A stretch of DNA of 46,498 bases. Origin: Lenisia limosa (lineage: Eukaryota > Protista > Breviatea). Each line of letters starts with the position of its first letter. Within the stretch, counting starts at the first letter, position 1. The translations under genes and the position numbers were made by a program. Positions 24,301 to 46,498 of the stretch are shown one piece after another. The notes below the pieces were generated by a model. The model was not told where the DNA came from and did no database searches. It saw nothing but the letters and a program-made list of their open reading frames with translations. The stretch is from positions 1-46,498 of the forward strand of contig LPNZ01003347.1 in assembly GCA_001655205.1 (NCBI GenBank), in the 5' to 3' direction.

Positions 24301-27300
24301 CACAGCAGCTGGTGGAGGACGGAGAGTGGTACGTGCCACCCCCATGTTCGCGGGGTCTCTTCACTAGTGTTTTTGCTCTAGAGCGAATATGCATGTAGTT
24401 GCCTTGGGTTATCAGTACTAACGATACAGACATTGCGGATGACTCTGTTGATGAGGTTCAAAAAGAACTGTAAGTTGATGTGCTAATTGTGTTTTTTGTA
24501 ATGTTTCCTCACTCTTCACATGAATGTCCTCCTCACACTCCCCACCCCCAGATCATCTGAGATCAAACTGAGAGCCCATCGTCGCGTTCTCTCCAATGAG
24601 GATGCAAAGGAGTGGGAGGACCTTTTGGCCTATGTCTCAATGGAGCGCGAGAGCGTACAGCGCTGTATGGGATTCGCTTTGGACAACGCCGAGTATTCAG
24701 AAGATGTAGGCGGAAGTAACTTCTGGACCTTGCAAACTGCCGAAAGAAACCAGGCTTGCTGAATCTTTTTGATTGACTCTCACTTGGTTATGACAAAACT
24801 AGGTGGTTGATGTGCTGATTGAGTCTCTCTGCCTCCCCGAAACATCTCTTCCCCCCAAGGTAAGGATGTGCTTTATATTCTGGTAGTTTTTTTTTTTGAA
24901 AAAAACCATGATGTGTTGACGCACTCTTTAGCTGGCTCGCCTCTACGTTCTCAATGATATACTCTTCAACACATCCTCCATTGCTAAGAATGCCCACAGC
25001 TACCGTACCCTGTATGCCGGGCTGCTTGCTGTCTTTTAGGCACTTGTTCTTCTTTCCTATTCCTCGTTCATGTCTATNNNNNNNNNNNNNNNNNNNNNNN
25101 NNNNNNNNNNNNNNNNNNNNNNNNNNNNNNNNNNNNNNNNNNNNNNNNNNNNNNNNNNNNNNNNNNNNNNNNNNNNNNNNNNNNNNNNNNNNNNTCCTCC
25201 AGAATCCGAGCTTCCAGTGTGACAAGACGGGTTTCTGGTGGGCTGGATGTAATGTGATCGGAGACATACTGGTCAAAAATCTCGAATTACTAACTCTATT
25301 GTAGAGGTGATCAAGTGCTGGGACAATTGGAGCCTTTTCCCAAGCTTTATCATTGAAGACCTCAAGTGAGCCTTTTATTTTCGACCGAAGTGAATACCAT
25401 GGTGTTCTTTAGAACATCCGCCATCATATTTTTCCGTCGTTCACCTTCCTTACTCCCCTCCCCAGTACGGCGTTGAATGCCAAACGTGAGGAAATTGAAG
25501 AGGCGCAGCAGAAGATCATTGAAGAGGAAAGCGTTTGGTCAATGTCAAAGAGGAAAAAGATGGAAAGAAAGAAGGTGGGACTCAATTCTTTATAATGAGT
25601 TATTTAAAATGAGTGATTTCGGGCTAACTCCCAAGGCTGAAGAAGCTCAGAAAGCCCTGACGGATGAGGTAATGAAATCGAACCAGTTGACAGCACTTCT
25701 CACACCCCCTGGTTCTCCGAGCAGTGAAGGTATGTTTCTAGCCTTTTTATTTCTCTTTTTTTCTTTTTTGGGTTATTTATTAGTGATTGCAAGTCTAGTA
25801 TCTTGTTTTTGTATTTCTGATATTTTTTCCTCCTTTCCATTATTCATGTGATTCTGACTTTTAGCTCTCACCCCACCCCCCACACCCCCGGGTAACCTAA
25901 CCTTCACGGACATTGAAACGCCGGTAAATGAGAAGGTTGTCGGCCTGTCCATGCCCCCCATGCCTAGCGCTTCCAATGGTAGGGGGGTTATCTATCTGAA
26001 GTTTTCCTTAACAGTGCTCTTGGTATTGTCAGATTAAGCCTTCATTCAAAATCCAACCTTATACTTGAGATGCTATGCCTGGAGCTACCCTAGCTGACCC
26101 GAGTCCTCTGGCTGGAACCACACCCTCAGGTACTTTCAATTTCTCTATTATGCAAATGTAGCACTGTCGAAATGTTATCTATTACATGCCAGTATGAAGA
26201 GATGTAAACAAAAATAATATCTTCCAGATATACCTGGTTCTACCCCAATGCCCGGTTCTACCCCAATGCCCGGTTCCTCCGCCATGCCCGGTTCCTTCGC
26301 CATGCCCGGTTCCTCCGTTATGCCCGGTTCCTCCGCCATGCCCGGTTCCTCCGTTATGCCCGGTTCCTCCGCCATGCCCGGTTCTACAACTATGCCCGGT
26401 TCTACAACTATGCCCGGTTCTACCCCAGGTAGGATCCTTTCAAATGCATATTCAGCTCTTTTCTGTTGAGTTGGTGTGCTATTTCTGTTGAGTTGATGTG
26501 TTCTTGGATTGTTAACCCACCCCCGTTGAACTGGACTGATCCAATTAGACATGCCTGCTCCTTTTGCTACTCCACAATTCTACCCCCAGCCCCCTATCCT
26601 CCCAACACCTGCTCAGCAGAGTAGGATGGATTTGGCTTTCAAGGGCTTTAATCTATGAGTGCTCTCCGTTTAAACCATGTTATATATGTACGTTGTATGA
26701 TTAATTCATTGGTGTAATGAGAAGTGGTATGGACTTTTTTTTAACCGAATTAGTCCCACACAATCAACCCATGGTCTTACAAAAACAAAGCGTGAGGGGA
26801 TGGATGAGTGTTGTTATTGTTGCTTTAAATGATATTTGTGTATTTTTCAGTACATGCTTTTGAGATGACGTTTCAGGCAAAGGAAGAGAAGGACATGGCT
26901 GCCTTGTCCGCCTCCCTTGCACAGGATAAGGCCAAGCTATTGGTAGGCAATCACCCATCTATGTTGATTTTCGTTTCAAAAATTATGATATGCTATTTTT
27001 CTTTGGCTTTACTGTCACTAATTTTTTGCTTACTGACACTTTCAGAAAACGCTTCAAGGCTAATGAGTTCCTTTAGATTTTTTCTAGTTCTTGCTGTATA
27101 TTATGTTGTCGTGATAGAAGTCAATTTACACACCCAGTCAACATTGAGTATTGTTTGTTGTTATTTGATAGTTGTATGGGCTAATCCTTATGGCTAATTA
27201 CTTGCTCACGTGCAACTGCCGTTTTTAGTTGTTTGGCTTTCGGTGCAAGTCTGATATCTTGGGGCCGTTTTTATGTTTTAATATGATTTTACAAGTCCCA

Positions 27301-29103: not shown

Positions 29104-30470
29104 CTAAGAAAACAACCCAAATTTATCCATACCCATTGTGACCAGACTAAGCTGGATATGCACTTTGCCGCTTGAAACTGTTCGTAGACGAGGGAACCTG
29201 CTGTGTTACCGCGTCTAATAACAGTTTTGTGTTACTAATCATTAACAAAGACAAAAACTGGCTGAAGCAGTCTAAATAATCACCTTGCTATGTTAAATGG
29301 AATATTTCATACGATACTATATTATTATATAATCCACATTCATTGTCGCACAAATCTCGGAAGGTGTCCAAAGTAATGTGAAGAGGAAATGGAAAGAAGA
29401 CTTAAATAAAAAGAAGAGGCTCATCCTTGGACAACAGAAAATAGTTACAATATTAGTCCACAAAGCCTATCAAAAAAAATCACCCGTGATTCCTGATAAA
29501 ATGTGCTGGTACCCTGTAGGTTCGACTGACCTGTCAGCAGGAGAGACGACAAGATCTTCGTTCCGCAACTGTGGATGCCCCCCCAGGAAAAACGCTATAT
29601 AAATTAGCGGATTGATATAAATAGAAATCAAATTGATGATAAAAAGGAGTAAACTGGAGAAAGGTGTGCTTCATAGACAAACAGTTAGGAATAAGCCCGT
29701 ACCCCACCTGAGACCTCCTCCATCAAGGAGCCTTGAGGCCGCCATGTTGGACACTCGAGTTCGTACATTCCCGGCGCCATTGGAACGTGCACCGAACCAT
29801 AGCCGGCTGGGAGGTCAGAGGAGGCCTTCCCATGGTCTAAAATAAAAGGTCTACTCTTGATATTTGCACGATTTATCGAGATATTTGTCTTGTGCTGGCT
29901 GTGAATACAAGCAATACAGCCGCTTTTGTGAATAACAAACACAATATTAAGCAGTACACTTCACAATATAAGCCAGGCCAACCCAGATCGTTACGTCCAT
30001 ACTGGTCCTGCGAAAAGACCTGAACGTAAAACCGAGGCCAGTCGGAGAGCCCCTTTGTCGAGAAATGAACATCCACAGGGTGACTCCAAACTGCGAACTC
30101 GTGGTCCTGTGTGGTCATCACTGCGTTAAAAACTTCAGGGCAAATGATATTTTTCGAGCTTGAAAAAATACTCCTATTTTCTATTTAACCAGTGTAGTAC
30201 ACTTGCTAATACGCTACAAAAAACAATGCAATAAAAGAAAAACAATGGCACCATTACAAACAAATGTAGAAAGTCTCCAAGATTAAAACACCCAAGAAAT
30301 AACCAAACAACACGACGCACCTCAGGCCAGTCCACTTGCGTCTGGCCGCGGTCGTAGCCCTCAATCTTGTCCCAACCGTTACCCGTGACAATGCCCCAAC
30401 GGCAAAAGAGGTTGTTGTTTGAGAAGTCGCTTCCTCCCACAACTTGCCCCACAATGTGAACTTCTGCCAT
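29104..30470 (-). CDS. B9D2: B9 domain-containing protein 2 (ciliary transition zone), 5 exons
   Basis: [123 protein letters not shown]. All introns are GT-AG. Confidence 0.95.
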
Positions 30471-30880
30471 CTTCAAGAAGAATCTGGCTTAGCGCACAGC
30501 AAAGGAGACTATGAGGGGTTTTCACTGATATCAACAACAATTGGCTTCACACAGATCAAGAATAGTATGGCCCTCAGAACAGTTCCTTTCAAGCAATTTT
30601 CCAGCTATTCAATCCTTTTTGTTTTTCTTTCTAAGTCTAATATTATTATAGCACTACCAAAATAGAAAAGGTAGAAGAAAGGGGACCACCAGCGAAAGCG
30701 GCGCCTTTTTAACTTGGGCGACCGCAACCTTGCTTTTCTTACATATTTCGCCTTTCTGCCACTCTTTCATGTGCTCTTTTATTGATAATTATACTATATT
30801 ATTATTTCAATAAACCTGGTGTTTGTACAAGAAGTTGCCCGGAGTTTTGCCGATTTTGAGTTCGCTCTGCTCGCAATGAG

Positions 30881-33800
30881 ATGACAGAAATGGAACCAGA
30901 GAACCAAGACCCGCGATTGGCTGCGTTTAGATTTCTTCTTTCCGGTTAGTGAGTGTTAAAATGAAAGAAGAATGAGAACCTCCTCCTTCACCCCTCATTA
31001 GACCCCGACCAAACGCTCCGTTTCTATCGAGACGGTCTTGGCTTGAAGCTATGTAGTCGCTGGAGGGAGCCTCCCCTTCAAGGCTTTTCGTTCTGCCATT
31101 TCATGGAACATGGGGCTAGGCCAATTAAAAAAGGAGTAGGAGGGCTTTGCTTGAAGAAAAGAGAGATATGATACCAAAAGGTAATGATATTGTTTAGATT
31201 GAGGCTGAACCAGAGACCCTTGACAACAACATAGCCCCGAACTCCTCCGTGGCGAATCTTCCTGAAAACTACGAGTTGGTCACGAACGTCTCGTCAAGCC
31301 TTAAGGAAGGTTTGCCCATAATACAGTGTCTGTTATGATTGTCTTCCGGGGAAACTCCGTTATCCTTGTGAGTGACAGTTGACAGGTCTGGCCATTGTGG
31401 AGGATGACGCAGAGGTTGAGGTCGAGCCAATTCTGCTTGAGTTTATCATGGATGAGGTTGGTTTGGATTCATTGATCAGAATCATAGATTTCTGTCATCG
31501 CTTCAGAGTAGACAGACAATTTTACCAGCACCCCGGGCAGGCGATAGAGTTTCTATCAACTTTTTTGTTCGAGACATAAAGGAAGCAGCGCAAAACCTTG
31601 GGGCTCTAGACTTCTTCCCGGTGTTTGAACCAATTGTAAGGGACCTGTTTTTCATCATGGTGTAGGAAGTCTACAAGCAGATTGTTGTGTCCTATATTGA
31701 TCCCAATGGAATCAAAGTGAATTTGACTTATGTGCCTCGTAAGCCTGACCCTCTCTTCTCACATTTCAGCTGCGCTTCTTATACCAGATCCACCTGGGGG
31801 TGTCATTAAACAATCTGACTGGGAAAGCGCTATCATACCCGTTTGTGGCTCCCATTCTTTATGTGAATTGTGAAACTGACTGACAAACCAGTGGCAAACC
31901 CGGTTTGCAGATGTCACCCTTCTGTGCCGACAAGCTGACCGAACCACTTCTTTCCTTTTAAGCTGCCTCACAAACAGGTCCATGCCTCTTGGTTTGATGT
32001 TATTGCTTACTCAGATGAAACTGTCTTGGGTGCTGATATTGCCTTTACAATGGCCAACACAAACGAACGTAGAATCCCACAGAGTATTAGCATGGCTACG
32101 TAAGCTGAATGAATCTACATTTTCTTGACAGGTCCATTTTTGCACTTAGTAGTAGTCTGAACGCTATAATCCACTCTCACCACCCGCAGAGCCCCATCAG
32201 CAGTGTCAGAAACTGAGCCGAACGGAGTGGCCTCGATGGAGCAAATGATCAATGACATGGCCAATGCTGATGATGAACTGCCTCCGGGGTCACTCCGAGT
32301 TGTCGATTCAGACGTCTTCCCAACAGGTTTTCTCACGTTAATAATCTGCGCGGAGCTCAATGAATTGGATTGGCAATGGGCAAAGAGACACACACTCTGT
32401 TTTGTGTCTCCATGAGCGTTTGCACAATGAACCAGACCCGGAGTCTCGAGTTTTGCTTAACATTGGTGAGCCGCTGTGATCTGTTGTAGCGCCTCTGATG
32501 GGGAAACCACTGATGACATAGTGTTTGAAACGACCCTCCCACTTAATCAGATTCTCTCCAATGCTCTGACGGACACTGACGCATCTGTTACCGTCAGCAG
32601 AGACCAAAGAGGTCCATGGGTGTTTGATATCCTCTTGTTTTCGAAGAGTTATTTTGAATCGAGGAAAAGTGTTTTTTTTTTTGTTTCATCTCACCCTTTC
32701 TCATTTTATTTAGGTCGATACCAACCTGGTATTACTCTTGAAGATCCAGACTCCAATATGATTTGTGTTTTTACAAAAGAGGTTTGAACTGTTCTCATTT
32801 GTAAAAATTTCAGGTTACCGAGGAAACAAAATCGTTCACTGAAGAGGTAGAGAGTACCTCATCGCCCTCTACTCCTGTGGTATCGGGGCTATTTTTCATG
32901 TCTTTCTTGGCTTCACTTTGGAAATAACCTTTATCAATATCAAGAGTTTTTTCAAACCTTTTAGTCATGAAAAACTATACTGACTCCACAGAACCTCAAA
33001 GACAATCAAACAGACAAACTCCGAAGTTTCATCCAAAGATCTTCGTCACTCTCTAAATTACACACGGTTGGTAGCAATGGGACTGTGTGGAGCCTGATAC
33101 AATCTTTTAAAAATTCTTATTCCTCATAGTATTCTATCATATCCTGCGTTTCAGGATTCTTGGGATTATTATAGTGAGATTTCTTATTGCTTCAGGATAA
33201 GGCACAGAATTTAACGCAATTGGCTATTCAAACCACGATGAAGGGATCACGAGGATTGCCAAGAGTAGGATCACTTTTCTCAACTATTCTTTTCACTGTT
33301 TAGAGCTCATCATTTTCCAAAATTGACTGTAAGAGCCTTTTCAAACTTATTATCTTTAGTTTCTATAAGTAGTGCAAAACCAGCAAGTCCTACTAAGGTA
33401 AGCTCTCTCATCATATTATTATTATACACGAATCAAAGCTTCATTTGTTTGTATTTTTGCCATTAATGTCTCAAAGATTACACTTTTATCTTTGTTGATT
33501 TGTTAAAGCAAAATTGGAAAAGTCAACATTTTTTGGATAATGAAAAAGAATGAGGATTGCGGAAGGTCATTCATGCCAACAACATTGTGGATATAAGCAA
33601 CAGCACACTTTAGGAACTCAAGATCGGGGGCCTTAATAGCATTGCGGGCAGTTGGCTGGGGATTTTCATGGGGAAGTATATTGGTTTTTCTGCACAAAAT
33701 TGGTAACAAGGTTGTAAGTCAACTGAGGCATAAGTACCTGACTCTTCCAATATCGCTTTCAATAATTATCCTTTTCCATTTTCATGTTTTCTCTTTTTTT

Positions 33801-34395
33801 GAAATTTCTCATCTTTCTCTAAATATATTATATACTTTCCCAATTCAGTAATGCCCCGTTTCTTTATTTGGATTTATATTGTTGTTTTTTATTTAGCATA
33901 AACCACTCTAGCAACACGCTGTGGAATCTGTGAGCCTCTACCAGGATGAAGAAATTGATATGGGGGTGGTTCGAGACGAAGACCCCTTAAACGACATGCT
34001 GTTGCAACGCACAATGGCAATTTCAGCCGTTGCTGCTCAGATGGAGGGTTTGCTACTCTGTTCTAATATCTAATAAATATAGTAGAAGGTGACGAGGAGT
34101 TTGGACTTGGACAGGACCACAGTCAAATGGCAAGTGTCATGATATCAGATGACACTCCTTCCAGGACCTTCGACTATGGAGGGTGAGCCTTGGTTCTTGC
34201 TTCTTGATTATCCCTGTGTAAAGCGAAACACCCCTTTTATTTGAAATCAAATTGGTTTTGTTTCGTATTGATAAGGGGGTTTTTTACAACAAAGCAATTA
34301 TTGATGGTAGTTCTCACCCACCCAGTTTTGCCAGTATGACAGCTTCAACACGAGCAACAAGAGGCAACAATATTGTTGAACAGGATGCTGGTTGA
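30881..34395 (+). CDS. Tandem VOC/glyoxalase-fold protein with a long low-complexity C-terminal tail
   Basis: DPDQTLRFYRDGLGLKL (VOC beta1-alpha1), LEFIMDEVDIKEAAQNL, YIDPNGIKVNL and a second LEDPDSNMICVF motif. Confidence 0.6.
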
Positions 34396-34486
34396 AAGCC
34401 AGAACCACTCGATTTGAAAACTGACCCCATTATCACCAATTGTGATGAACCACTTCCCCAAATGGACCATGTTATTAATATTGTAT

Positions 34487-36781
34487 TTAAAGGTTGAAAT
34501 GAATTGATTCAGAAACTAAAGAAATGGAAGAGAAAAGGGACCATGAAACACACAAAATCCAGGCAATGAATCCAATTACTGCCTGAATTGTTTTTTGAGG
34601 GGCTATGACAAACAAGGGGCCAGAGGAAACAGGAGCACTCTGCAAATGGTCAGTTATCTTGCTGAGATAACAATACTCCATAATGATGATACATGATCAT
34701 AGCAGATGTTAGACTACCTGTTATCAATACTTTTCCGGAACCCACAGGTAACAAGTCAAACGACACGCCTCCAACGGACTTCAAGAAAAGCGCAAGATAG
34801 CCAGCAATCAAGGCCGGGCCCAAGTACTGTAATGTCAAACATAAACGCTCCGACAGCCTGACGTCGGATTGGCTTTTAGATTATTTCTTATGCTTCCATA
34901 CCCAACTCAGAGTCTGTAATATCATCTTAACTGATATGTCATCGAGTCAATTTAAATTCTAGCAGAATGAAATAAAATGCATTTAAACAAGATAATAGTG
35001 TTTTCTTCAACACTGACAAACCTGCATTGCAATAATGGGCAGCATAAGTACCAGATTGGCAAGCTAGATGATGATTTCAGATAAAGTACAGCTTATTCCA
35101 TCCAGCGAAAAAAATTGAGAAGAAATTTGTCCACTCACTTTATTGGAGATAGTCTTTGGAGACTCTTCATCTTGTTTCATTTGCTCCAAATGCGATTTAG
35201 CTGAATTCAAATATAACTGCATGAATTCTAAATAAAAACTTGCAACTGAATCTTTAAAACAGAAAGCCGAGAAAGAGCCAGAAGCAACAATGATCCGATA
35301 AAGATCTGAAGGGACTGGAAAGAGTCCAGGCTGAATAAGGGGGAAAAGAATACTGAATTCCAATAAATGAAGCAAAATAAGAATTAATTGGATGAACATA
35401 GACTGCTGAAGCAAGGATGGGTGTCATGAAGTCCAAAAGAGAAACAAGTTTCCTGGTTAAGATTTTGACGCAACTTGGAAAGAGAAACTGTTGAGTCACT
35501 AAGGGACATTTGAAGAAGACGTCCCTGTCTCATGGCAGGAATGAAAGTGAGGGACGAAGTGAAGCAAGCCATAAAGGCCAAAAACACGGGATATAAACTG
35601 ACACCAGAAAACATTGCTGCAAACTCCCTTGAAAAGTAAAAGTGCACGTGTTAATAGTTGATGAGAAAATTTTCATGATGCTATTATATCAAGATCCTTT
35701 GCTAATTATCAAAAGTTACAATCTGAGAAGCATAGAAAAGTGGCAGAAGCAAATATAGTCCATCCATTGTTGATTTAAGGAGGTTACTAGTTAAATGACT
35801 AATATATTCTTCAATAATACAATCAAATACTCTACCATTATGATGAAGCCCTGATACATTCTTCTATAATACAACCAAATACTCTACCATTATGATGAAG
35901 CCCAGCAAACAATAAAGCAGAAGCGCTCTGTTCAGTCTCTTGAAGTGCAAAAGACCGCATCAAAGAGGCTTGAAGTGACGTTGAAAACCCGATCAGCTCT
36001 GCAAGATAAGTAAGAAATTCTTTACTGTAAAGACCCAATAAAGGATTCTTCCATGCTTCAAACTATCTCACCTTGGTCCAAATTGCTTAAATCAAGTAAC
36101 CACAAAGTTAGTAAGGATAAAATACTGGAAAGAAGGAGAATGAGTAGAATGAAAACAGAGCAAAGAAGACTCCAATAAACGCGGTTGCTATAAGGTATAG
36201 TTGAGATTGAGCAAAATGCTTCCAAGCAAAGAACACAGAAAACCTACAATATCAAAGAAAATATGGCTTACAGTGCATGGATAGAAACTGCAAGAGGTAC
36301 ATAGTAACCAGGGTGATTTGGTGTATAAAAGAAAACATTCCACAATTCAGCAATAACAAAACAAATAACCGCTGGTAAGAACCAAATCAAAAACCGTAGC
36401 AACATTCAGTTAAAAGAGTGGAGAAAGTTTGATAGTCATCGAAACGTATCACTGAGTCTTCGTCGAGCTTGAGATAGTCAACAACGACTACTTTGTTACC
36501 TTGACTGTGACAAAATTTTCGTCTTTGAGTTGGCTAGCGCAGTTCTTCTTTTGCTTTAACTGGTGATGTCGACGCTCCTTTCGTGGCAGATTTCTTGTCA
36601 AAAAAAACACAAACTGAGAATTGGAGACTAAGTAGTCTTGCTGCAAAATGCTTTCATGGTTTTTATGCAAAAGGCAAGAAAGATTATTGAGAATTTGTAA
36701 AGAGAGTAGCTGCAGGACCTTTGTTCGATAGAGAACAAAGCATGGCAGAACAATACTCAGGATGGAAGGCGGGATAAGCAT
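34487..36781 (-). CDS. TMEM161: TMEM161-family multi-pass membrane protein
   Basis: FLAFMACFTSSLTFIPAMRQG (cf. FLTFPGLRLA), LLDFMTPILASAVYVHPI, RLSVLKIQLQLYLNSAK (cf. RLAMMRSHLQAYLNLA), MQYLGPALIAGYLALFLKSVGG (cf. LQYLTPLILTLNCTLLLKTLGG), and C-terminal AVIGFIAWILC. Confidence 0.85.
36103..36125 (-). other. Candidate 23-nt GT-TG intron in TMEM161
   Basis: GTATTTTATCCTTACTAACTTTG carries a TACTAAC branch-like motif and an in-frame TAA. A canonical alternative with a 14-nt micro-exon exists but fits family homology less well. Confidence 0.5.
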
Positions 36782-37242
36782 GTTTTCTCCTTCCCTATTG
36801 ATAATAAAACAAGTTCAACTCCCCTACTATCAGTAGACTTTTCTTGAAGAGTTAATTAGAGGGGGGGGTGAAGTGTGCCCCTGTCGCGGCAAGTGGGTAG
36901 GAGGGGGTACTAGAAGAAGAAAAAAAGGGGGAAAGGACAAAAGAGAGAGAGGAAGCAAGTGAAGCAAGCAAGAGCAAAAGGGGGAAAGACTGATCTATGA
37001 TCTATTTGCTATTGGTCACCTCGTTCCAGCCTCGTTCCCCTCCTCTTGTTTCCTTTCTAATTGTTGTTGTGTGCGAGTTGTGTGGAGGTTGTGTGCACGT
37101 GTTACCCAGAAAGCAGGAGCTTCACAGAACGGACCCCCCAGTCGGATAGAGTCAGACGACTGACTTCGTGGGTTGGCTGACAAGTGATAATAGAATAATA
37201 GACAACATATATATCTAATTTGATCTATTCTGGTCATTTATC

Positions 37243-39123
37243 ATGCAGGGTATGAATTTGTATTATTTATTTTTTTGTTCTCTCTTTTCATTTATTGTCT
37301 CTGAAGTAATTCCCAAGTTATCTTATTCTTTTTTGTTTTTGCAAGCAGATTTCTCTTCTCTCATCTCTGTTTTCTTGGGGTAGCACAACTTTATTTTTCT
37401 TTTGGAAAGGACATAAAAAGAAGCAAGAAATTGTAACGCACAAAGCTGAATTCCCAACTCTCTCATTCTCCAGTGTTGAGCAAGATGACAGAAACCATTG
37501 ACGACAACATTTCTGAATCCAGGTTTGCCCAGAGAGCTGACCAATGTGTCTTGTCTGTGTTGTGATTCTTTGAGGGCTCATGGACTGTGGATGATATTTC
37601 TGAGGGAATATATAAGAGGTAGTAGTGCACAGAGATTATATTCAGTTCTTAAAATTACACAATGCAACGTTGTACAGTGTCAGTGATGCTTCCTTTCATG
37701 CAGTTATTGATACTCATTAGTGTTACATCTGAAAATAGGCATTTTATGTCTGTTGTTGAAGCTTTTAGCTTCTATCAGTTTTATGGTGGAAAGTTGATGA
37801 TTTATTAATAATTGTTGTTGGCTTGAAAAGATTAAACACAATCATTCACGGTTAAATGAGCATCAAAAAGAGGCCGTCGCAAAACTTGGTGTTAATGAAA
37901 GACTTCAAAATGTTCGCACCTCAATGTTTGTTGTGATCTTTGCTTATTGTCCTCAGACTAATCAATTCCGACTTTATCAATTTGATTCTTGGAGAAAGTG
38001 GATTTGTTTATCCGTCATATTTGGTTTCAGGTATTAAATACGACCTTCCTACAGAGAAACGTGAGTTCTGTATTTCCCATTTACCGTCCAGCGTTATCAA
38101 AAGACTTTGACAAAGTCTTGACAACTCTCAGACAATTCTGCCGTGATTGGTCGTCGGAAGGCCTGGATGAGCGCAATGAGTCTTATCTGCCGTGTAGGAT
38201 GGGGGGGGGGGACCAAAAAAACCCAAATCTACCATAATGGCGTAATGTTTGGGAGGTTGGGAGGAAGTGTGGGGAAATTATCTTCACCGATTTCCTCAAA
38301 ATTCATACAACAGTGCTCCAACTTCTGGAAAAGTACGTGCCAAGTGACATGCCAGAGAAACCTTCCGTCCTTGTCCCTGGTGCAGGATTGGGGAGACTCG
38401 TGTGGGAAGTTGCAATGAGAGGCTACCATGCTCAAGGTACTTGTTTATGTTCAACCTAGGAAATGAGGTGTCGTACTTCATGTTGTTGGCGTCCAATTTC
38501 ATTTTAAATAACTCTGCTTTTGTCAATGAGTTTCATTTGAGCCCATTTGCTTTGAGTAATCTGAATGTCTTCGCAAATAAGTTTGTGTTTATGCCTAACC
38601 AGCGACAACACTCGGGTCATCCACGTTCCTGACGTTCTCCCAGCCTCAATTCCCGAAGGTGTTCAGTTCTCTATGTGTGCCGGTGAATTCTTGGAAGTGT
38701 ACTCGCATTCTCCCAACTCCTTCAATTGTGTAATGACGTGCTTTTTCTTGGACACGGCTATGGTTGTAGTGGATTACATTGAAACCATATATCAGTTCTT
38801 TCTTTTCACTAACCTGTATCCTCAAGCCTGGTGGTGTATGGTTGAATTTAGGCCCGTTACTCCACCATTTCGCAGACTCCTCAGAAGCAACTGTGGAATT
38901 GACCTGGGAAGAAATTCGAAGCTACAATGAAATGATTGGATTTGAAGTCCTTGTAAGCCAATGAGGGTATGGTGTAATAGTTCAGGAGGAATCAAGGCAG
39001 CCTGCACGATACACATGTAACACAAGGAGTATGATGCGAGTCCACTATGACACTGTTATAATGGCGGCAAGGAAACCCATGGTTTGTTACCATAACCTGT
39101 ATTCATCATCAATAGAAGGGTAA
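37243..39123 (+). CDS. CARNMT1: Carnosine N-methyltransferase (N2227-like) (5' end approximate)
   Basis: [26 protein letters not shown]; [41 protein letters not shown]; [12 protein letters not shown]; [10 protein letters not shown]; [24 protein letters not shown]; [11 protein letters not shown]. Confidence 0.95.
38795..38816 (+). other. 22-nt non-canonical GT-TG intron in CARNMT1
   Basis: GTTCTTTCTTTTCACTAACCTG. Removing it restores [16 protein letters not shown], and no AG gives the right frame. Confidence 0.8.
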
Positions 39124-39206
39124 AGCTCTGTCTCCTCGAGCGTATCCTATTTCACAAATGACGTCTTCATCGCAGAACCCTGTTAGAGACTTGCCATTCC
39201 AATGAA

Positions 39207-41631
39207 CTACTGTAACAAAAGCTTGAGTTCGTCATCGGAAGGTGGCTCCCCAATTTCCACGTTATGGGTGTCGGGCTTCTCTTTTGGCCAGTATTTAACG
39301 TCGTAAACAACAATTGCCTTCTTTCCATTAGCCATATCCTTGGTCACAAAAAGGAAATTGAATTTGTCAATCCAAGCCCAATGAGGTGCTAAAACATGAG
39401 AGTTTGCCTCTCTTACCATGAGGCTGCTTTCTGATTTTCGAAATAGACCTGATTTCTTGGATTAGAGTTTCCTTCAAGCAATGAATTAGCTCAGTTTCAG
39501 AAGAAAAGAACTGGTGAGCGAAATAGAAATAAACGGCCGATTTCTTGAAGAACTTCTTGATAGCAGTGTTAACAGATTCAGAGACAACAACTTCCCTTAT
39601 GCGTCAGGACAATCTAATTCAATCTCAATCTCGACAATAATTCCCAAGACCTTCCCCCTTACTCAATTTCTTCAACAACATCTGTGAGCCAATTTGGGAT
39701 AGTTGCGTTTTCAGCGGAGTCAAACCGTGGTAGATAGGGCAAATAACCAGAAAGAAAAAACCTTAATATCAAGAATGGGGGTTCCATCAACCAAATCAAT
39801 ACCAGAAAGAATGATTGTTTTCCTATCCGCAGAGAATCCTTCAACCTAAAATTGTCATCCCTCAGTCCCACAAAAAGACGGAATATCTCGATACAATCCT
39901 CGTTAAAATTCGATATTGTACAGACCAGTCTATTTCGTTAGGAAGCTCCCGGGGAACCAATCCTTATCATATCTTGAAACATGTGATGTAGTGTGGACCC
40001 CACTTATTCGTTCGAGCGTGTGTGCTTTTTGCCAAGTGAATCCCTAGTCATAGCCATCTCCCCTCAAACCTTCGCAAGAGATAATCCAATGGGGTTCGGC
40101 CTATGCGGAGTTCGAGTTGAGAACATTCCAACCTAAAACAAGTCACATGATAGTTTTTGAAGAAGAAGAATGATAGATGTATTGGTTAACTCAAGAAAAA
40201 GGCAAATAAAAAAAAAAACACATAGTACATATGATATATTATATAGTAATATACGTATAGTATGCCATATCATATAATACTAGTAGTATATACTATATCA
40301 TACAATATCGTATGTATTTATATAATACATATAATATGATATATTATATCTATAGAAATGAGAAATAAAAACAAGGTTGTGTCTGAAAAAAAGATAAAAA
40401 AATGTCGAAAAATTACAACAACTAATATGATGTTCCAAATCTATGTGATTTGACATTCTATCTCAAGAGTTTTACAATTTGACACCGTTTGCCGACCCTT
40501 TTTCCGCCAAGCCGAGGAGGCGCTACCTTCCCTCTTGTTCTTGACGCCTTCGAGGCATCCTAATAAGATAAATGGAAAGCAGCAAAATGCGAAACCCTAC
40601 TTTGGAAATCGATCGTGCAGCTTTGTTCTTATTGTGGTGGAATTCAAAGAGGACCCAGCAGTGTGATGCACCCCAGTCGGCAAAGCATGACGGAGGGCTG
40701 CAGTCTGAAATATCATTCGTTAAAAGAATCCCAGTTCAAACACACCGCAATTATCATTCCTTTATTAGAATGCCCATAAAATGCGCAAAACAGTGACTAA
40801 TCTAATAAAAACTTCATCAACTTCAACACACCATATGGATCCCACCTTGGGCCGACAATGTTGGNNNNNNNNNNNNNNNNNNNNNNNNNNNNNNNNNNNN
40901 NNNNNNNNNNNNNNNNNNNNNNNNNNNNNNAACCCTCGAGGATTCTCAAATGGGCTCTGGAGTGAGGTACAATGTTGCCTTGACGTGGGCAGGCGTTGCA
41001 CTCTCTGAAGACCGACTTCAAATAGCCTGAGGGTGGCGGTGAGTTATTGTAGCTATGTCCATGAATCCAAATAATAGAAAGGCAAAACCTGGAAAAGCCA
41101 AAGGGTTGAGACCTTATTTAAACAGTTCTTACCGATAGGATTGCAAACAAGCTCCCTTTGCTGTTCAGCCGTAACCACAGCAGCTGGAGGATTCTAAAAG
41201 GTGAGGGTCTCAAAATGTTGTATATGTGGTACCCCTGTTGGAACACTTTTTTGGGGTGAAGGGGCTTGTATTTGCGCTTGGCATGAATTGAAAGTGCAAA
41301 ATATTGTGATCATAAAGCACTCTATCAATAATAATGTTTCACCGCTCCATGAGAGTGGTATCGAACAAGGGTCCGCCTACCACTTCTTCGTTTGTTTTTG
41401 GCTTCTTTGTGACAACATCCTCAGTGGGAGCGGTCTGCCTCTTCAGCTCGGACCCCGATCCCCGTTGAGCAGTCGCAAGCCTCAGCAAATCTGCTTCAAA
41501 TTCAGCGGAAAGATTCAGCTCTTTGAAGGAGGAGTCTTCTTCTTTTTTCAAGTTTTCTGTATTAAAATCAAATAAAACAAACCAAGGATATTATAGAGCA
41601 CTCTGGATGGTGCAATCAGATAGTCTTTCAT
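39207..41631 (-). CDS. TRMO: tRNA m6t6A37 methyltransferase TrmO (TsaA/YaeB family)
   Basis: [86 protein letters not shown]; C-terminal LIQEIRS. Start codon less certain. Confidence 0.95.
39740..39761 (-). other. 22-nt non-canonical GT-TG intron in TrmO
   Basis: GTTTTTTCTTTCTGGTTATTTG splits the invariant DIK|PY motif and contains no AG. The unspliced frame reaches TGA. Confidence 0.85.
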
Positions 41632-41651
41632 CTTGATATGAGGGATGACCA

Positions 41652-44600
41652 ATGTTAGCTTCGCAAAAGTCAAAACTTAACTATGTCCCCACGATAGGTA
41701 AATATTTGAATGATATGCGAACAATCTAAGCTCGTAAACCAAGTAAAAGGGCTTTCTTTCGTCATTCGTCGCCCCCCAAACAAACCAAGCATGGGGTGGT
41801 GTATATGAGGATTCGTGAAAATTGAATTTTGTAAAATTGTAAATAGGATTAGAATAAGTGGATATAACTCACATAACTGGGATATACAGGGGATAAAATA
41901 ATAATATAGACAGACTAGCATAGACAGGAGAGAAAGTTGAAAGCAGTTCAGAGAAGAAGAGGAAGAGGCGTGTAATCTACCCCAATCTCATTCTGTCATT
42001 TCAGCCGCTTCTAGCCTCAGGAACTTGCACAGAACTTGCCAGGTGCTTAGAGTCTAAGCCAATCTCAGTGCTTTATGGTTGGGGGGGGGGTAATGTTTGA
42101 TCCCCCTTTCTTGATGGAGTCTTGTATGAATGACTTTGCACACGTAAAGTTCTTTTGATAGCTATATTTTGCTAATAGAACTGAAACATTTAATTGTCAC
42201 TTCTGATGATGAAACAGAGTGTCTTCCTTGATAATCGTAACCGTTTCGACTCTCTTCAAACTTTTCTATTCGAGAGTTTCATAGCCTGTAGCCTCCACGA
42301 AAGCCAGTTAGAAGACGGCGAGGGGGAAGTGCTGTCACATCGCAGTTCAAGCCTCCACAGCCCATATCAGAGGTAGCCAATCTAACTCCTGATTATGTCA
42401 CTTCTTATATATTTGATAACTGGCATTTGATATTGAGGATCTAGGAACCATTTGATATTGAGGATCTAGGAACCATCCCCAAAGCCAAAAGCCAAAAAGG
42501 GGAGGCCAGTCAAGAATGAGACGCTTCCGTCCAAACCGACACGGATGACTTTGCGACAGAAGGCCAAGTTGGAAGGAATTGCACCGCNNNNNNNNNNNNN
42601 NNNNNNNNNNNNNNNNNNNNNNNNNNNNNNNNNNNNNNNNNNNNNNNNNNNNNNNNNNNNNNNNCCGGAAATACTCATCAAGAGCGTCAAGAAAACCGTT
42701 GTTGAAGACGAAGAGGATGATGATGACTTTGAAGAGAAGTTGTCAGTAACGTCAAGGTCGCCGACCGAGCCAGTCGACTTGTTTCTTCCTCCAAACTATG
42801 TTCAGTCTGACAGCAACTTGTCGGACGATGACCGGTCAGGATGGGATCAGGTTTTTGAGGGTTTTGCTTGTAACTCCTCCCCCCCCCCCTCCAACCTCGA
42901 TGTTCTTCTTTTCTGTACANNNNNNNNNNCCCGACATGGAGATTGACTCGCCAATTAAACTGGCCGACTCCGTTGAATCCGAGCCAGCCACTGTGCTTTC
43001 TCCAAAGATCATAGATCTAGATGCACCGCCCAGAGCAGCACCAAGTCCTGCATTCCCATCTTCTGTTCTCAATGAATCTACTCCTTCCATGCAGACCCCT
43101 ATTGATTCACCTCCTCCCTCCCCAATTCCTACCCCCAAGACCCCNNNNNNNNNNNNNNNNNNNNNNNNNNNNNNNNNNNNNNNNNNNNNNNNNNNNNNNN
43201 NNNNNNNNNNNNNNNNNNCTCCGTCTTTCAAGCCCCCCCAGAAGGCTTTATCTCGGACCCCTAAGACGTTACCCCCGAAAGAGGTTTGAGGTGGTTTATG
43301 TTCGCGATCCAACTTGGGTGTGCGCTGACAGTAGCATCAACTCACCGCCACCCCTCAGGATAGTCCAAAGAGAACCGCCGCGCCCACTGGGTCGTCTTCT
43401 GATAGTGATGAGGACTTTATTAATGTTTGCTCTTTGGATGCTCTTTCCCTTTTTTCAATTTTCATAAGTGACTTTTCTAATTGTATTTCGAAAGAAAGGA
43501 AATAGTATCGATAAGAGGATCAGTTAAAAGATTATTTTAAAAAAATGTGATTACTTTTATGACCTCGTTGATTGCCTTATTTACTGTATAGGTGTCCACT
43601 ATCAGTACCCCGACGACATTCCAGCCCCCAACCAACAAACCACAACAAGACCTTCGAGAAGATTCCAACTCAATGTCCCCTGAAATTGTGATCCATCAGG
43701 TGGTGAAGCCTGCAGCCACCCTTGAATCCGACATTTCTTTGGCCGATATCCAGGGTTACGGTCGCGATGTTGAGCGGGTCTTGCCATTGATGCCGCAAAC
43801 GGAACAAAAACGGTCCCCTTCATTGCTGCAAAATGGTTGGGGTGAACATATATATATATATTCATTACCTCTTCAATTATTAGAAAATATAACACATATT
43901 AATTTAATTCACCTAATTTACAGTCCAGCGAGTAGGATTTTTTACAGTCCTGTAGGGAAAAGGCCACGCGGCCGTCCTCGAAAAGACGGATCTTTGCCAA
44001 ACACCCCACGCACAACGCCAAATGCTACACAGAAAAAGCAGTCCATGGCCCTTTTACAGGTACGGTCTGACACATTGTGTATGAATTGTTGTCATGTAGC
44101 TACTTGAAAACTAGGTATGTACTTACTTTATAATTCTTCGGTGATTTGATAAAATATTCTCAGTTTTCATCATTATTATTTATGTTGGGTACGGACATTA
44201 TAATTTGATAAACAGAAGCGCTTCCGAAGTGTTGACACTGACAATGGCGACAGTTCCGATGATGACGTCCCTGAAGCCCTCCATGTTTCTTTGAAAACTA
44301 TTAAAGTATGTTCCATTTGCTGATTAAATTATATCATATTATGCATGAACGGCTAAACCCTATAAAACCCTATAAATCCCGATATTTTAATAAACTTTTT
44401 GAATAATTTCCCTCAAAAAACTTCAACATCAATAAAAACCAATAGAAATACGAAATAATGACCGAATGTAAAATTTCACACATTGCAGGAAAATTGGCAC
44501 TCCGGGCCGGGCGCCCGGGGTCATTTTCTGAAATAATCAGTTCAAAAATCTTGCTCTTTTTGTTATTTTGGGATGTTCTCAAATTTGGAATTAAGTTTGT

Positions 44601-45491
44601 GGAAGTTTCATAACTTTTGCGAATTCGGACCCCGAAAGTTCCAGAAAGTTCCTTGCCTAATTAGGAAAATAGGGCTTTGAAAGTCCCAAAATTCTCGAAT
44701 TTTCCTTTGTTGGTAATTTCAGTCAAAATGTCAGGCTTCATAAAAAAAATATAGGGTTTTATAGGGTTTAGCCGTTCATGCTTATATAAATACCCTGAAA
44801 TAAGCTGATTATATTTATTGGATCCATCAGCAAGACAAGTTGTGTTACTTAAATAGCGTATTTGACCTCTTTAGACTTCAGTTTACGATCGATGGAGAAG
44901 ATCAACTGGTCAAATGTCAAATTGGATTGTGAACATCATCAAAAAGAACGCACAGTTTTTTCTCTTCCTAACTTCAGGGAAACTCTTGGCTTGATTCCAA
45001 CTGAACACCATAGGACTGCAATGCAATTTTTACAAAACTATGGACACGAGTGAGTTTTATGCGATTATTATATTATGTTATTATTCATCAGTTTTGAACA
45101 AGATTTCATCTTCCAGATTGTCTGGTCAATTGACGTCAGCAAAACTTCCCAACACAGTCAACCCAATGTCTATTAACAAAGACCTGGTAAAATCGATTTA
45201 TAACTTTACATTTCTAGGAGAATTTTGAACGTGATATTGACAACGCTGTGCTACAAAATGAATTTCTGAAGGACGTTGTTGATGATGTCGACCATTCAAA
45301 GTGGGTTTTATGACAGTTCATTCCTCTCGACAATTTGTAATGTGAATCTGTTAACGCAGTAGAATCGTTTCGGGAAGTGCCAAAGAAGAACATCTGGTAG
45401 GTTGAGCTTTCAACTCCATTGCTATCTTCTTTTTTTTTTGCTTATTCAATAGGAAATGATGAATGAGTACCCAGCAACCAGTTCAATATAG
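41652..45491 (+). CDS. Low-complexity (Pro/Ser/acidic) nuclear protein with an AT-hook motif
   Basis: Exons MLASQKSKLNYVPTI/GLSFVIRRPP, EDEEDDDDFEEK, a Pro-rich PAPSP tract, KRPRGRPRK (AT-hook), and a globular-looking C-terminal block (MEKINWSNVKLDCEHHQKERTVFSLPNFRETLGL...). Boundaries approximate. Confidence 0.6.
44343..44781. mobile_element. 439-bp non-autonomous DNA transposon (MITE) with 32-bp TIRs and a TTAT target-site duplication, located in an intron
   Basis: GCATGAACGGCTAAACCCTATAAAACCCTATA (44343-44374) is the exact reverse complement of 44750-44781. TTAT flanks both ends (44339-44342 and 44782-44785). No ORF. Confidence 0.9.
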
Positions 45492-45747
45492 CGCTTTTGA
45501 CCCTGTCCGCCTAAACTAGAAGATATTTAATTGTGAAGTTTTTGTTTCTTTTTAATGTAATGTTTCTCCGTATACAGTCGTGAACATTTTAGAGACCTAG
45601 GGGAATTCCTTGTCCTTCAGAACACTTCACAATGAAACGTTTCAAGACAACTTTGGAAGGCAATAATATAAATAAATAGTACACATACATATCATATGCA
45701 AAACACATAGAAAATAACATTAACACAAAAAGAAACGCCGTAACCAT

Positions 45748-46498
45748 CTATTGTCCAGACTCCTTCCTCCGCTGAGCTCTATTTCCAGCCTTGTTTGTTG
45801 CTCTGAACCAGCTTTGGACCTGAATTAGCCAAATCAACAAACATCCGCCATGAGAACATGTTCAGTGTCGATGATGAGACGAGTAATGTTCAGTTTCGAA
45901 GTCTTTTGAATGGGTGATAGCACTCTCCACCACATTTCAATCTGCCTCAAAGCCCAAATAACTTTATTTGTTTTTGTGACCTGGAACAATAAACCAAGAG
46001 AAACAGCTCACCCTGGAGCTGACTTGCGTGTACTCCAACCATGACATCAAAACAGCAGAAACTGTTAGCAGAACGGGAATCCAGAGCGAGTAATCGAATT
46101 AGTAACACTATTTACCGAATGCGCCAAGAAGGGCTGCCAATGCACTGAGGATATAAACCATAATATTCATCCGCGAGGCCCTTTTGTCCAGGCCTGCTGC
46201 CTTCTTTTCAAAGTATCTCAGAGCTGTCTTAATTCGGAACTCGATGTATTGCTCTGGCAGAATATACTGCAAGCTGACCCTCGAAAACATGGGTTCATGT
46301 ACAAACTAAATAAATGAAGCAAACAAGGTAACAAACTCCTCTGAGATCTTCATCAAACACATTTTGGTTCGTAACTTTCGGAATAGCCTCCAAATTGTTT
46401 TTCTAGATTGTGAAACTCTCTAAAGAACATATGATACTATATATGATATAGGTGACCCCACATAACCGTACCCAGCCACATAACCGTACCCACTTTCA
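45748..46498 (-). CDS. SLATT (SMODS/SLOG-associating 2TM effector)-domain protein, 3' part (gene continues beyond the window)
   Basis: LPEQYIEFRIKTALRYFEKKA..RMNIMVYILSALAALLGAF..SLWIPVLLTVSAVLMSWLEYTQV..KTNKVIWALRQIEMWWRVLSPIQK..NITRLIIDTEHVLMADVQSW follows the SLATT_1 pattern known from SLOG-SLATT proteins. Confidence 0.75.
46095..46115 (-). other. Candidate 21-nt GT-CG intron in the SLATT gene
   Basis: GTAAATAGTGTTACTAATTCG contains two in-frame stops. Removing it gives LGAFDYSLWIPV. An in-frame canonical AG lies 33 nt further on. Confidence 0.5.

Follow-up and report, generated by a model that had tools for sequence, protein, structure and literature searches.

Few signals in eukaryotic gene expression are as constant as the AG at the 3' end of introns, and the question raised by this locus is whether the shortest introns of the breviate Lenisia limosa can dispense with it. 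We analysed contig LPNZ01003347.1 over its 46,498 nucleotides (nt; hereafter the window), a eukaryotic sequence of ~40-45% G+C that is rich in short introns. Three segments that begin with GT and end with TG, two in CARNMT1 (37.5-39.1 kb, plus strand; Pfam CARME, PF07942) and one in TrmO/TsaA (~41.2 to 39.2 kb, minus strand; Pfam TrmO_N, PF01980), would have to be removed exactly to yield the conserved proteins, and none of them has an AG-ending alternative. We consider it highly probable that these are ordinary-looking U2-type micro-introns of 21-25 nt, with a GT start and a YTRAY-like motif, whose last two letters may be TG and possibly CG. The splicing machinery seems to accept a non-AG intron end.

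Six exon pieces of CARNMT1 cover positions 8-267 of the CARME profile in collinear order, and the homologues are 45-61% identical. The micro-intron at 38795-38816 (22 nt, plus strand; GT..CTAACCTG, also given as GT..CACTAACCTG) lies between an exon that closes with ...DYIETIY and an exon that opens with ILKPGGVW, and the profile coordinates are contiguous at 188-190 across it. Splicing the segment out reads DYIETIYHILKPGG (DYIETIYH|ILKPGG), which fits more than 20 homologues (pattern YIETIYxILKPGG), and the spacing across the junction is that of every homologue fetched, for example YIRTIYSILKPGG, YIETIYKILKPGG and YVRCINRVLKPGG. We listed all open-frame bridges made by removing a GT-started segment of 12-80 nt between FLDTAMV and LKPGGVW. 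None of these ends in AG, and 38795-38816 is the only one retaining the conserved residues DYIETIY and ILKPGGVW, which bears out the proposal, made in a preliminary description of the window, that this GT..TG segment needs to be removed. Its 3' octamer, CTAACCTG, differs from that of the canonical micro-intron 38581-38602 of the same gene, CTAACCAG, at position -2 only.

The intron starting at 37793 of CARNMT1 (plus strand) is a predicted third TG intron, absent from the earlier list. The conserved blocks around it, anchored by EAFSFYQ and LEKIKHN, are common to homologues, and the reading frame changes within ~30 nt. The only nearby AG (37791-37792) would be followed by an exon starting at 37793, which is blocked by an in-frame TGA at 37798-37800. 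Listing all GT-started bridges between EAFSFYQ and LEKIKHN returned none with an AG end; from the GT at 37793 the only G-ending bridges stop at a TG, at 37814 (22 nt), 37817 (25 nt) or 37820 (28 nt), within a TTGTTGTTG run. With the 22-nt form, 24 residues separate Y and HQK, as is usual in the family, and the MAFFT alignment favours the 25-nt form. The run at 37814-37820 offers three in-frame TG acceptors 3 nt apart, which could give a NAGNAG-like wobble.

The exon pieces of TrmO match TrmO_N positions 34-56, 63-84 and 88-111; the gene carries the PRQ and DIKPY motifs, and the PDB relatives 7btu, 3okx, 1xqb and 2nv4 match. The micro-intron at 39740-39761 (22 nt, minus strand, GT..GGTTATTTG) ends in TG. 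Across it the gene reads LSGIDLVDGTPILDIK, then the 22 nt, then PYLPRFD (LDIK|PYLP), and the solved relatives read LSGIDLLDGTPVLDIKPYVP (7btu, LDIKPYVP), DLVDGTPIFDIKPYI (1xqb, FDIKPYI) and DCLDGTPLVDLKP (3okx) at this junction. The exhaustive listing contained no AG-ending bridge here, and 39740-39761 was the sole bridge to retain the motif, so that the claimed need for its removal held for TrmO as well.

RNA from TrmO reaches the edge of this intron. In a poly-A RNA run, two contigs matched the window at 95% likeness, one of 60 nt and one of 795 nt (contig 10); we suspect that RNA contigs with 22-nt skips fall below this threshold. Contig 10 is spliced at four GT-AG introns of TrmO, all on the minus strand: 39846-40069 (224 nt; joint 39842|40067, cut +3; CT..AC on the plus strand), 40133-40496 (364 nt; joint 40130|40495, cut +2), 40560-40600 (41 nt; joint 40558|40600, cut +1) and 40705-40933 (~229 nt as it stands around the gap 40865-40930, with a true length of ~240 nt). 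At the last of these, the loose end of the contig at 40705 continues with letters found from 40935 onward. The exon directly upstream of the TG intron, 39762-39845 (minus strand; TrmO_N 88-111), corresponds to positions 3-83 of the contig record with no differences. Contig and genome part company after 39762, the final base of this exon, and the 2 letters that the contig carries past this point do not match the GT of the intron. Hence the predicted TrmO donor is in use or, at the minimum, the RNA does not enter the intron sequence. The end of contig 10 would fit a de Bruijn branch between two spliced forms sharing their first two letters, for example from acceptors offset by 1 nt (TG| and TGC|, each followed by CC), or a plain drop in coverage. 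A further canonical TrmO intron, 39596-39662 (67 nt, GT-AG, minus strand), is predicted from the reading frame and the bridge listing.

The 60-nt RNA contig joins 36187|36272 and thereby removes a canonical 84-nt intron, 36188-36271 (minus strand), from a gene for a TMEM161-like membrane protein (~36.8 to 34.9 kb, minus strand). All of the longer introns shown by RNA here (41, 84, 224, 364 and ~229 nt) are GT-AG, as would be expected if non-AG ends went with very short length. For CARNMT1, the RNA run contains 66% of the 31-mers, against a computed ~71% for a fully spliced and 100% for an unspliced transcript; this share is near the spliced value and far from the unspliced one, and it cannot single out one intron.

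The DNA letters at the TG sites are supported by other assemblies. An N-free contig of the ENA metagenome assembly ERZ3820729 (NODE_465, 23,966 nt, coverage 38; records L002/L003) aligns to window positions 29659-46493 in one order and one orientation and is 100% identical over 29659-40864. It carries the letters of the window at all four candidate sites. A Logan DNA contig (12,871 nt, depth 40) has 0 differences to the window over 34900-40377, and window, Logan and ENA contigs show the same letters at CARNMT1 38795-38816; the three assemblies may rest on shared reads. None of the candidate introns has an N gap within 1 kb. We regard the letters as real, a consensus error at depth 38-40 at three sites being very unlikely to the point of not being credible. 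Logan DNA contigs, which show presence rather than absence, contained no joined, intron-free form, and hence gave no sign of removal at the DNA level.

The candidate in the small SLATT gene (46.4-45.7 kb, minus strand; first large exon resembling SLATT_1) ends in CG. It spans 46095-46115 (21 nt, minus strand, GT..CTAATTCG), is in frame and has two stop codons inside. The upstream exon scores 23.6 bits against positions 1-44 of SLATT_1 (PF18181), below the 26.3 cut-off. Removal of the segment gives ...ILSALAALLGAF-DYS-LWIPVLLTVSAVLMSWL, in which two hydrophobic transmembrane helices are joined by DYS, and unless the 21-nt CG segment is taken as an intron there is no second helix; the SLATT_1 family is expected to have two transmembrane helices following an N-terminal helical part, and the name SLATT implies the pair. 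A rival intron, 46062-46115, is 54 nt long and in frame, uses the same donor and has a textbook acceptor, CTAACAG; it would fuse both helices into one 27-residue stretch. On these protein grounds the CG reading appears slightly the better of the two. The GT..CG segment described earlier is present, whereas the need for a non-AG end is put in doubt by the canonical rival. A second GT-started string ending in CTAATTCG was seen at 26746-26768 (23 nt, minus strand), where the flanking open frames are short.

The TMEM161-like gene had also been listed, with no coordinates given, as needing a non-AG intron, and this claim failed at the places tested. The gene contains a tandem duplication of 52 nt in 2 copies with a 94% match (35802-35903), which repeats the peptide GLHHNGRVF(G/D)CIIEE and shifts the frame by one, and splicing must skip part of it. 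Canonical GT-AG segments of 22 or 25 nt bridge this shift as well as the GT-TG segment 35836-35857 (22 nt), the only 22-nt GT..TG option located in the gene. Another candidate, 36103-36125 (GT..TACTAACTTTG), is coding sequence once the RNA-supported 84-nt intron is applied, and longest-frame models of the gene were dropped on the grounds that they contradict this intron. A Pfam search with single exon pieces of the TMEM161-like gene gave no match.

A look-alike was found in a B9-domain gene. The string at 29682-29702 (21 nt, GT..CCTAACTG) lies inside a canonical intron of ~110 nt, 29598-29708 (minus strand; Pfam B9-C2 on called reading frames), which reaches the conserved FFLGGHPQL block, and it was rejected. 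A PDB search with short TrmO and B9 exons gave no match.

The TG introns stand within a class of ~22-nt introns whose existence had been claimed from four GT..AG examples, and all four were located at exactly the coordinates given for them. Two are in CARNMT1 on the plus strand and are backed by consecutive CARME coordinates: 38437-38459 (23 nt; positions 39-85, then 84-119) and 38581-38602 (22 nt, ending CTAACCAG; 84-119, then 123-190). The other two, on the minus strand, are placed by sequence and reading-frame logic: 35453-35474 in the TMEM161-like gene (22 nt, ending TTAACCAG) and 45820-45842 in the SLATT gene (23 nt, ending CTAATTCAG). In these four, TTAAC, TCAAC, CTAAC or CTAAT ends 3-4 nt before the AG, a YTRAY-like arrangement.

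Our table of micro-introns held 12 entries, or 11 after removal of the B9 candidate. Seven end in AG, three in TG and one, the SLATT candidate, in CG; non-AG introns are 21-22 nt long and AG introns 22-23 nt. The three secure TG introns and the CG candidate all begin with GT, and the boundaries of exact deletion cannot be shifted at either CARNMT1 site. Branch-like motifs are CTAAC in 38795-38816 and CTAAT in 46095-46115, with weaker ones in 39740-39761 (GTTAT) and 37793-37814 (ATAAT/TTAAT). The A of the motif lies at -4 to -7 in the tabulated introns, taking branch sites from motifs, and in 11/11 introns the last base is the first G found 3 nt or more beyond that A. The U2-type AG at the 3' end is replaced by TG in three introns and by CG in the one candidate. 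The U12 5' consensus RTATCCTT is absent, the 5' ends being GTTCTTTC, GTTTTTTC, GTTGATGA and GTAAATAG.

Counting as secure only junctions with conserved residues on both sides, we arrive at three predicted TG introns in two genes (CARNMT1 twice, TrmO once), beside two canonical micro-introns of the same genes. The preliminary description had put the number of non-AG cases at four in ~10 kb; TMEM161 drops out as not needing one, SLATT is ambiguous, and the secure three include the new CARNMT1 case. Its further claim that AG is dispensable is right in that at least three introns end in TG with no usable AG, and goes too far in that every case retains the last G, the variation being limited to position -2 (A, T, perhaps C). 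The pattern would be described better as a relaxed NG or YG acceptor in the shortest introns than as absence of a 3' signal.

Several points weigh against the TG ends as genuine acceptors. None of the RNA records examined spans a TG or CG junction. The acceptor positions rest on protein homology. Queries with the CARNMT1 exon, by exhaustive representative search, by homologue-led alignment and with TrmO did not find a transcript-derived CARNMT1 or TrmO protein of Lenisia; they returned only homologues or the genomic reading frame. The acceptor of the CARNMT1 intron starting at 37793 may be any of 37814, 37817 and 37820. Window-wide counts, compared with shuffles and with open-frame filters, showed no enrichment of TG ends, in a test that had no power in 46 kb, where even AG was not enriched. 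The B9 string, a GT..CTAACTG look-alike, also counts on this side and is a warning for motif-based counts. A Viterbi gene finder based on codon usage, run with AG plus each other dinucleotide as micro-intron end, gained from TG no more than from control dinucleotides, the codon bias being too weak to give the test any power. With the window statistics powerless and the B9 candidate a false positive, the case rests on the three homology-anchored junctions and not on counts. Two further points come from yeast. U at -2 is strongly defective in the second step (bioRxiv 10.1101/212811), so that tolerance of TG here would need changed machinery. About 9 nt must separate branch and 3' end in the yeast P complex, which makes it doubtful that the motif A at -4 to -7 is the true branch point. 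The motifs may mark the wrong sites for branching; if they do not, the machinery would have to be changed.

A mechanism can nevertheless be outlined. Recognition of the 3' AG in the yeast P complex involves pairing of G(-1) with G(+1) and a contact between A(-2) and the branch adenosine; Slu7 is not needed where the distance from branch to 3' splice site is below 9 nt (bioRxiv 10.1101/212811). Taken together, the short-tether rule and the G(-1) pairing suggest that a very short tether could place the 3' end without a search for AG. In Lenisia, a branch point 3-6 nt from the intron end would act as such a tether, delivering the 3' end to the catalytic centre. Exon ligation would then use whichever G comes first after the branch A. 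As G(-1), it would still pair with the 5' G(+1), as in yeast, and the contact of A(-2) with the branch adenosine would be relaxed, so that T (or C) is tolerated. Tentatively, and with a confidence that falls a little short of even, we propose that the 3' end of the shortest introns is the first G at a fixed few nt after the branch adenosine, whatever the base at -2, and that GT-TG (and GT-CG) introns form a routine, constitutive class throughout the genome. The ruler mechanism with altered U2AF35, Prp8, Prp18 or Slu7 recognition that had been suggested earlier is an inference; the genes for these factors are outside the window.

Other explanations can be set against these predicted TG acceptors. 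Canonical solutions might have been missed, the TG segments lying within longer GT-AG (or GC-AG) introns or beside tiny unrecognised exons. The B9 string is exactly such a case, SLATT has its in-frame 54-nt intron and TMEM161 can be bridged canonically, but at both CARNMT1 sites and in TrmO conserved residues abut both ends of the segment, and a longer intron would remove ILKPGG, the PY of DIKPY or the LEKIK..HQK block, all common to homologues. With no AG-ended bridge among those listed, we think this improbable for the three junctions. Somewhat less probable still is gene decay or partial loss of function, with the acceptor destroyed by an A-to-T change so that the segment is retained and the transcripts are frameshifted. 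Such a change would agree with the 3' ends, which differ from the canonical ones at -2 only, and with the RNA, in which no spliced TG junction appears and contig 10 breaks at the TrmO junction, possibly from mixed forms. However, the three cases lie in two genes that are conserved and single-copy and whose frames are otherwise undisturbed on either side of the segment, and the TrmO RNA is expressed, spliced at four other introns and not continued into the TG intron.

The segments might also be removed by something other than the major spliceosome: as U12-type introns, which tolerate varied 3' ends and short distances from branch to end, by an endonuclease and ligase, by translational bypass or by elimination from the DNA. 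The 5' ends GTTCTT, GTTTTT and GTTGAT do not follow RTATCCTT, the size, GT start and CTAAC-like motif are those of the adjoining canonical micro-introns, and elimination is countered by the lack of a joined form among the DNA contigs; we regard this whole group as very improbable. The least credible explanation is an assembly error that hides true AG letters. Many N gaps in the scaffold point to a modest quality, but the same TG letters stand in the window, in the Logan contig at depth 40 and in the ENA contig at coverage 38.

Spliceosomal introns with predicted GT..TG ends can be compared with several known systems. Human TG acceptors reportedly lie beside a nearby AG, which was a premise of the preliminary description. 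Szafranski et al. 2007 (PMC2374985) describe TG as an alternative 3' splice site, a rare one, in human U2-type introns. The Lenisia introns are like these in the GT 5' end, the TG 3' end and the context of the major spliceosome, and unlike them in that TG would be the only possible acceptor of constitutive introns in conserved genes, with no AG in reach that keeps residues and frame. Tiny introns are known from Paramecium (~25 nt), Stentor (15-16 nt) and the nucleomorphs of chlorarachniophytes (18-21 nt), and are described as GT-AG. Here too the introns form a narrow length class of ~20 nt (21-23 nt) in which a branch-like A precedes the 3' end by a few nt; in contrast to the ciliate and nucleomorph introns, 4/11 of those tabulated end in TG or CG, the CG being a candidate. 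In tunicates, non-canonical splicing reportedly alters the 5' end of the intron as well. For Fritillaria and Oikopleura, one paper (PMC13326754) describes non-canonical introns genome-wide, linked to divergent U2AF and to changes in small nuclear RNAs. The GT/AG rule would be relaxed in both lineages, on a large scale in the tunicates; in Lenisia variation is confined to -2 in the shortest introns, which retain the 5' GT and the final G. Ligation over a short distance from branch to 3' splice site in yeast provides a rationale, in that short tethers lessen the need for second-step factors, yet U(-2) is strongly defective there and the 3-6 nt estimated from motifs here is shorter than the yeast structure seems to allow. 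Non-canonical U12-type introns share variable 3' dinucleotides and a branch site near the 3' end, and their 5' consensus is absent here. According to published work, genome and transcriptome data exist for L. limosa. Our literature searches returned neither work on the introns of Lenisia or of other breviates nor any account of constitutive GT-TG introns.

If the TG acceptors are real, the A(-2) contact can be given up in a free-living eukaryote when the intron is very short, and the division of labour between A(-2) and G(-1) would be directly testable. If the first-G rule holds, it implies a changed active-site check in the second step, involving the contact of the branch A with N(-2), the Prp8 alpha-finger and the Prp18 loop, and it would provide a natural setting in which the parts played by A(-2) and G(-1) can be told apart. 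Gene finders and spliced aligners that require AG would frameshift or truncate many models of this genome, as CARNMT1 and TrmO illustrate, and comparative work on a lineage placed close to the root of animals plus fungi would be distorted by such models.

CARNMT1 contains further introns. One, at 38953-38985 (plus strand), is a likely canonical GT..AG intron of 33 nt, placed by bridge listing from EMIGFEVL to ARYTCNT. Another follows ERNESYLP and includes, at 38196-38230, runs of 11 G and 7 A; a DNA contig has a loose end beside these runs, at 38193, which suggests a repeat or an assembly branch. The nearest short relative of CARNMT1, contig L001 (Logan SRR23272267, 1010 nt), is 56% identical on the exon and has one GT-AG intron of 61 nt, and none at the positions of the CARNMT1 introns of the window. 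JGI (Joint Genome Institute) metagenome contigs yielded neither a relative of the CARNMT1 exon nor a TrmO junction in spliced form.

The ENA contig closes all 4 N gaps of the window and shows that the gap lengths estimated in the scaffold are wrong: 40865-40930 has a true length of 77 nt (L003:5598-5674), 42588-42664 of 5 nt (L003:3936-3940), 42920-42929 of 110 nt (L003:3571-3680) and 43145-43218 of 68 nt (L003:3288-3355). The 110 nt concealed at 42920-42929 may include part of an exon of the Ser/Pro-rich gene at 42.2-45.5 kb (plus strand). Outside the gaps, contig and window disagree at just two indels, of 10 nt and 2 nt, near 44622 and 44481. These fall inside a transposon-like element at 44340-44784, which lies in an intron of the Ser/Pro-rich gene and resembles a miniature inverted-repeat transposable element, with 35-nt inverted ends that are 97% complementary.

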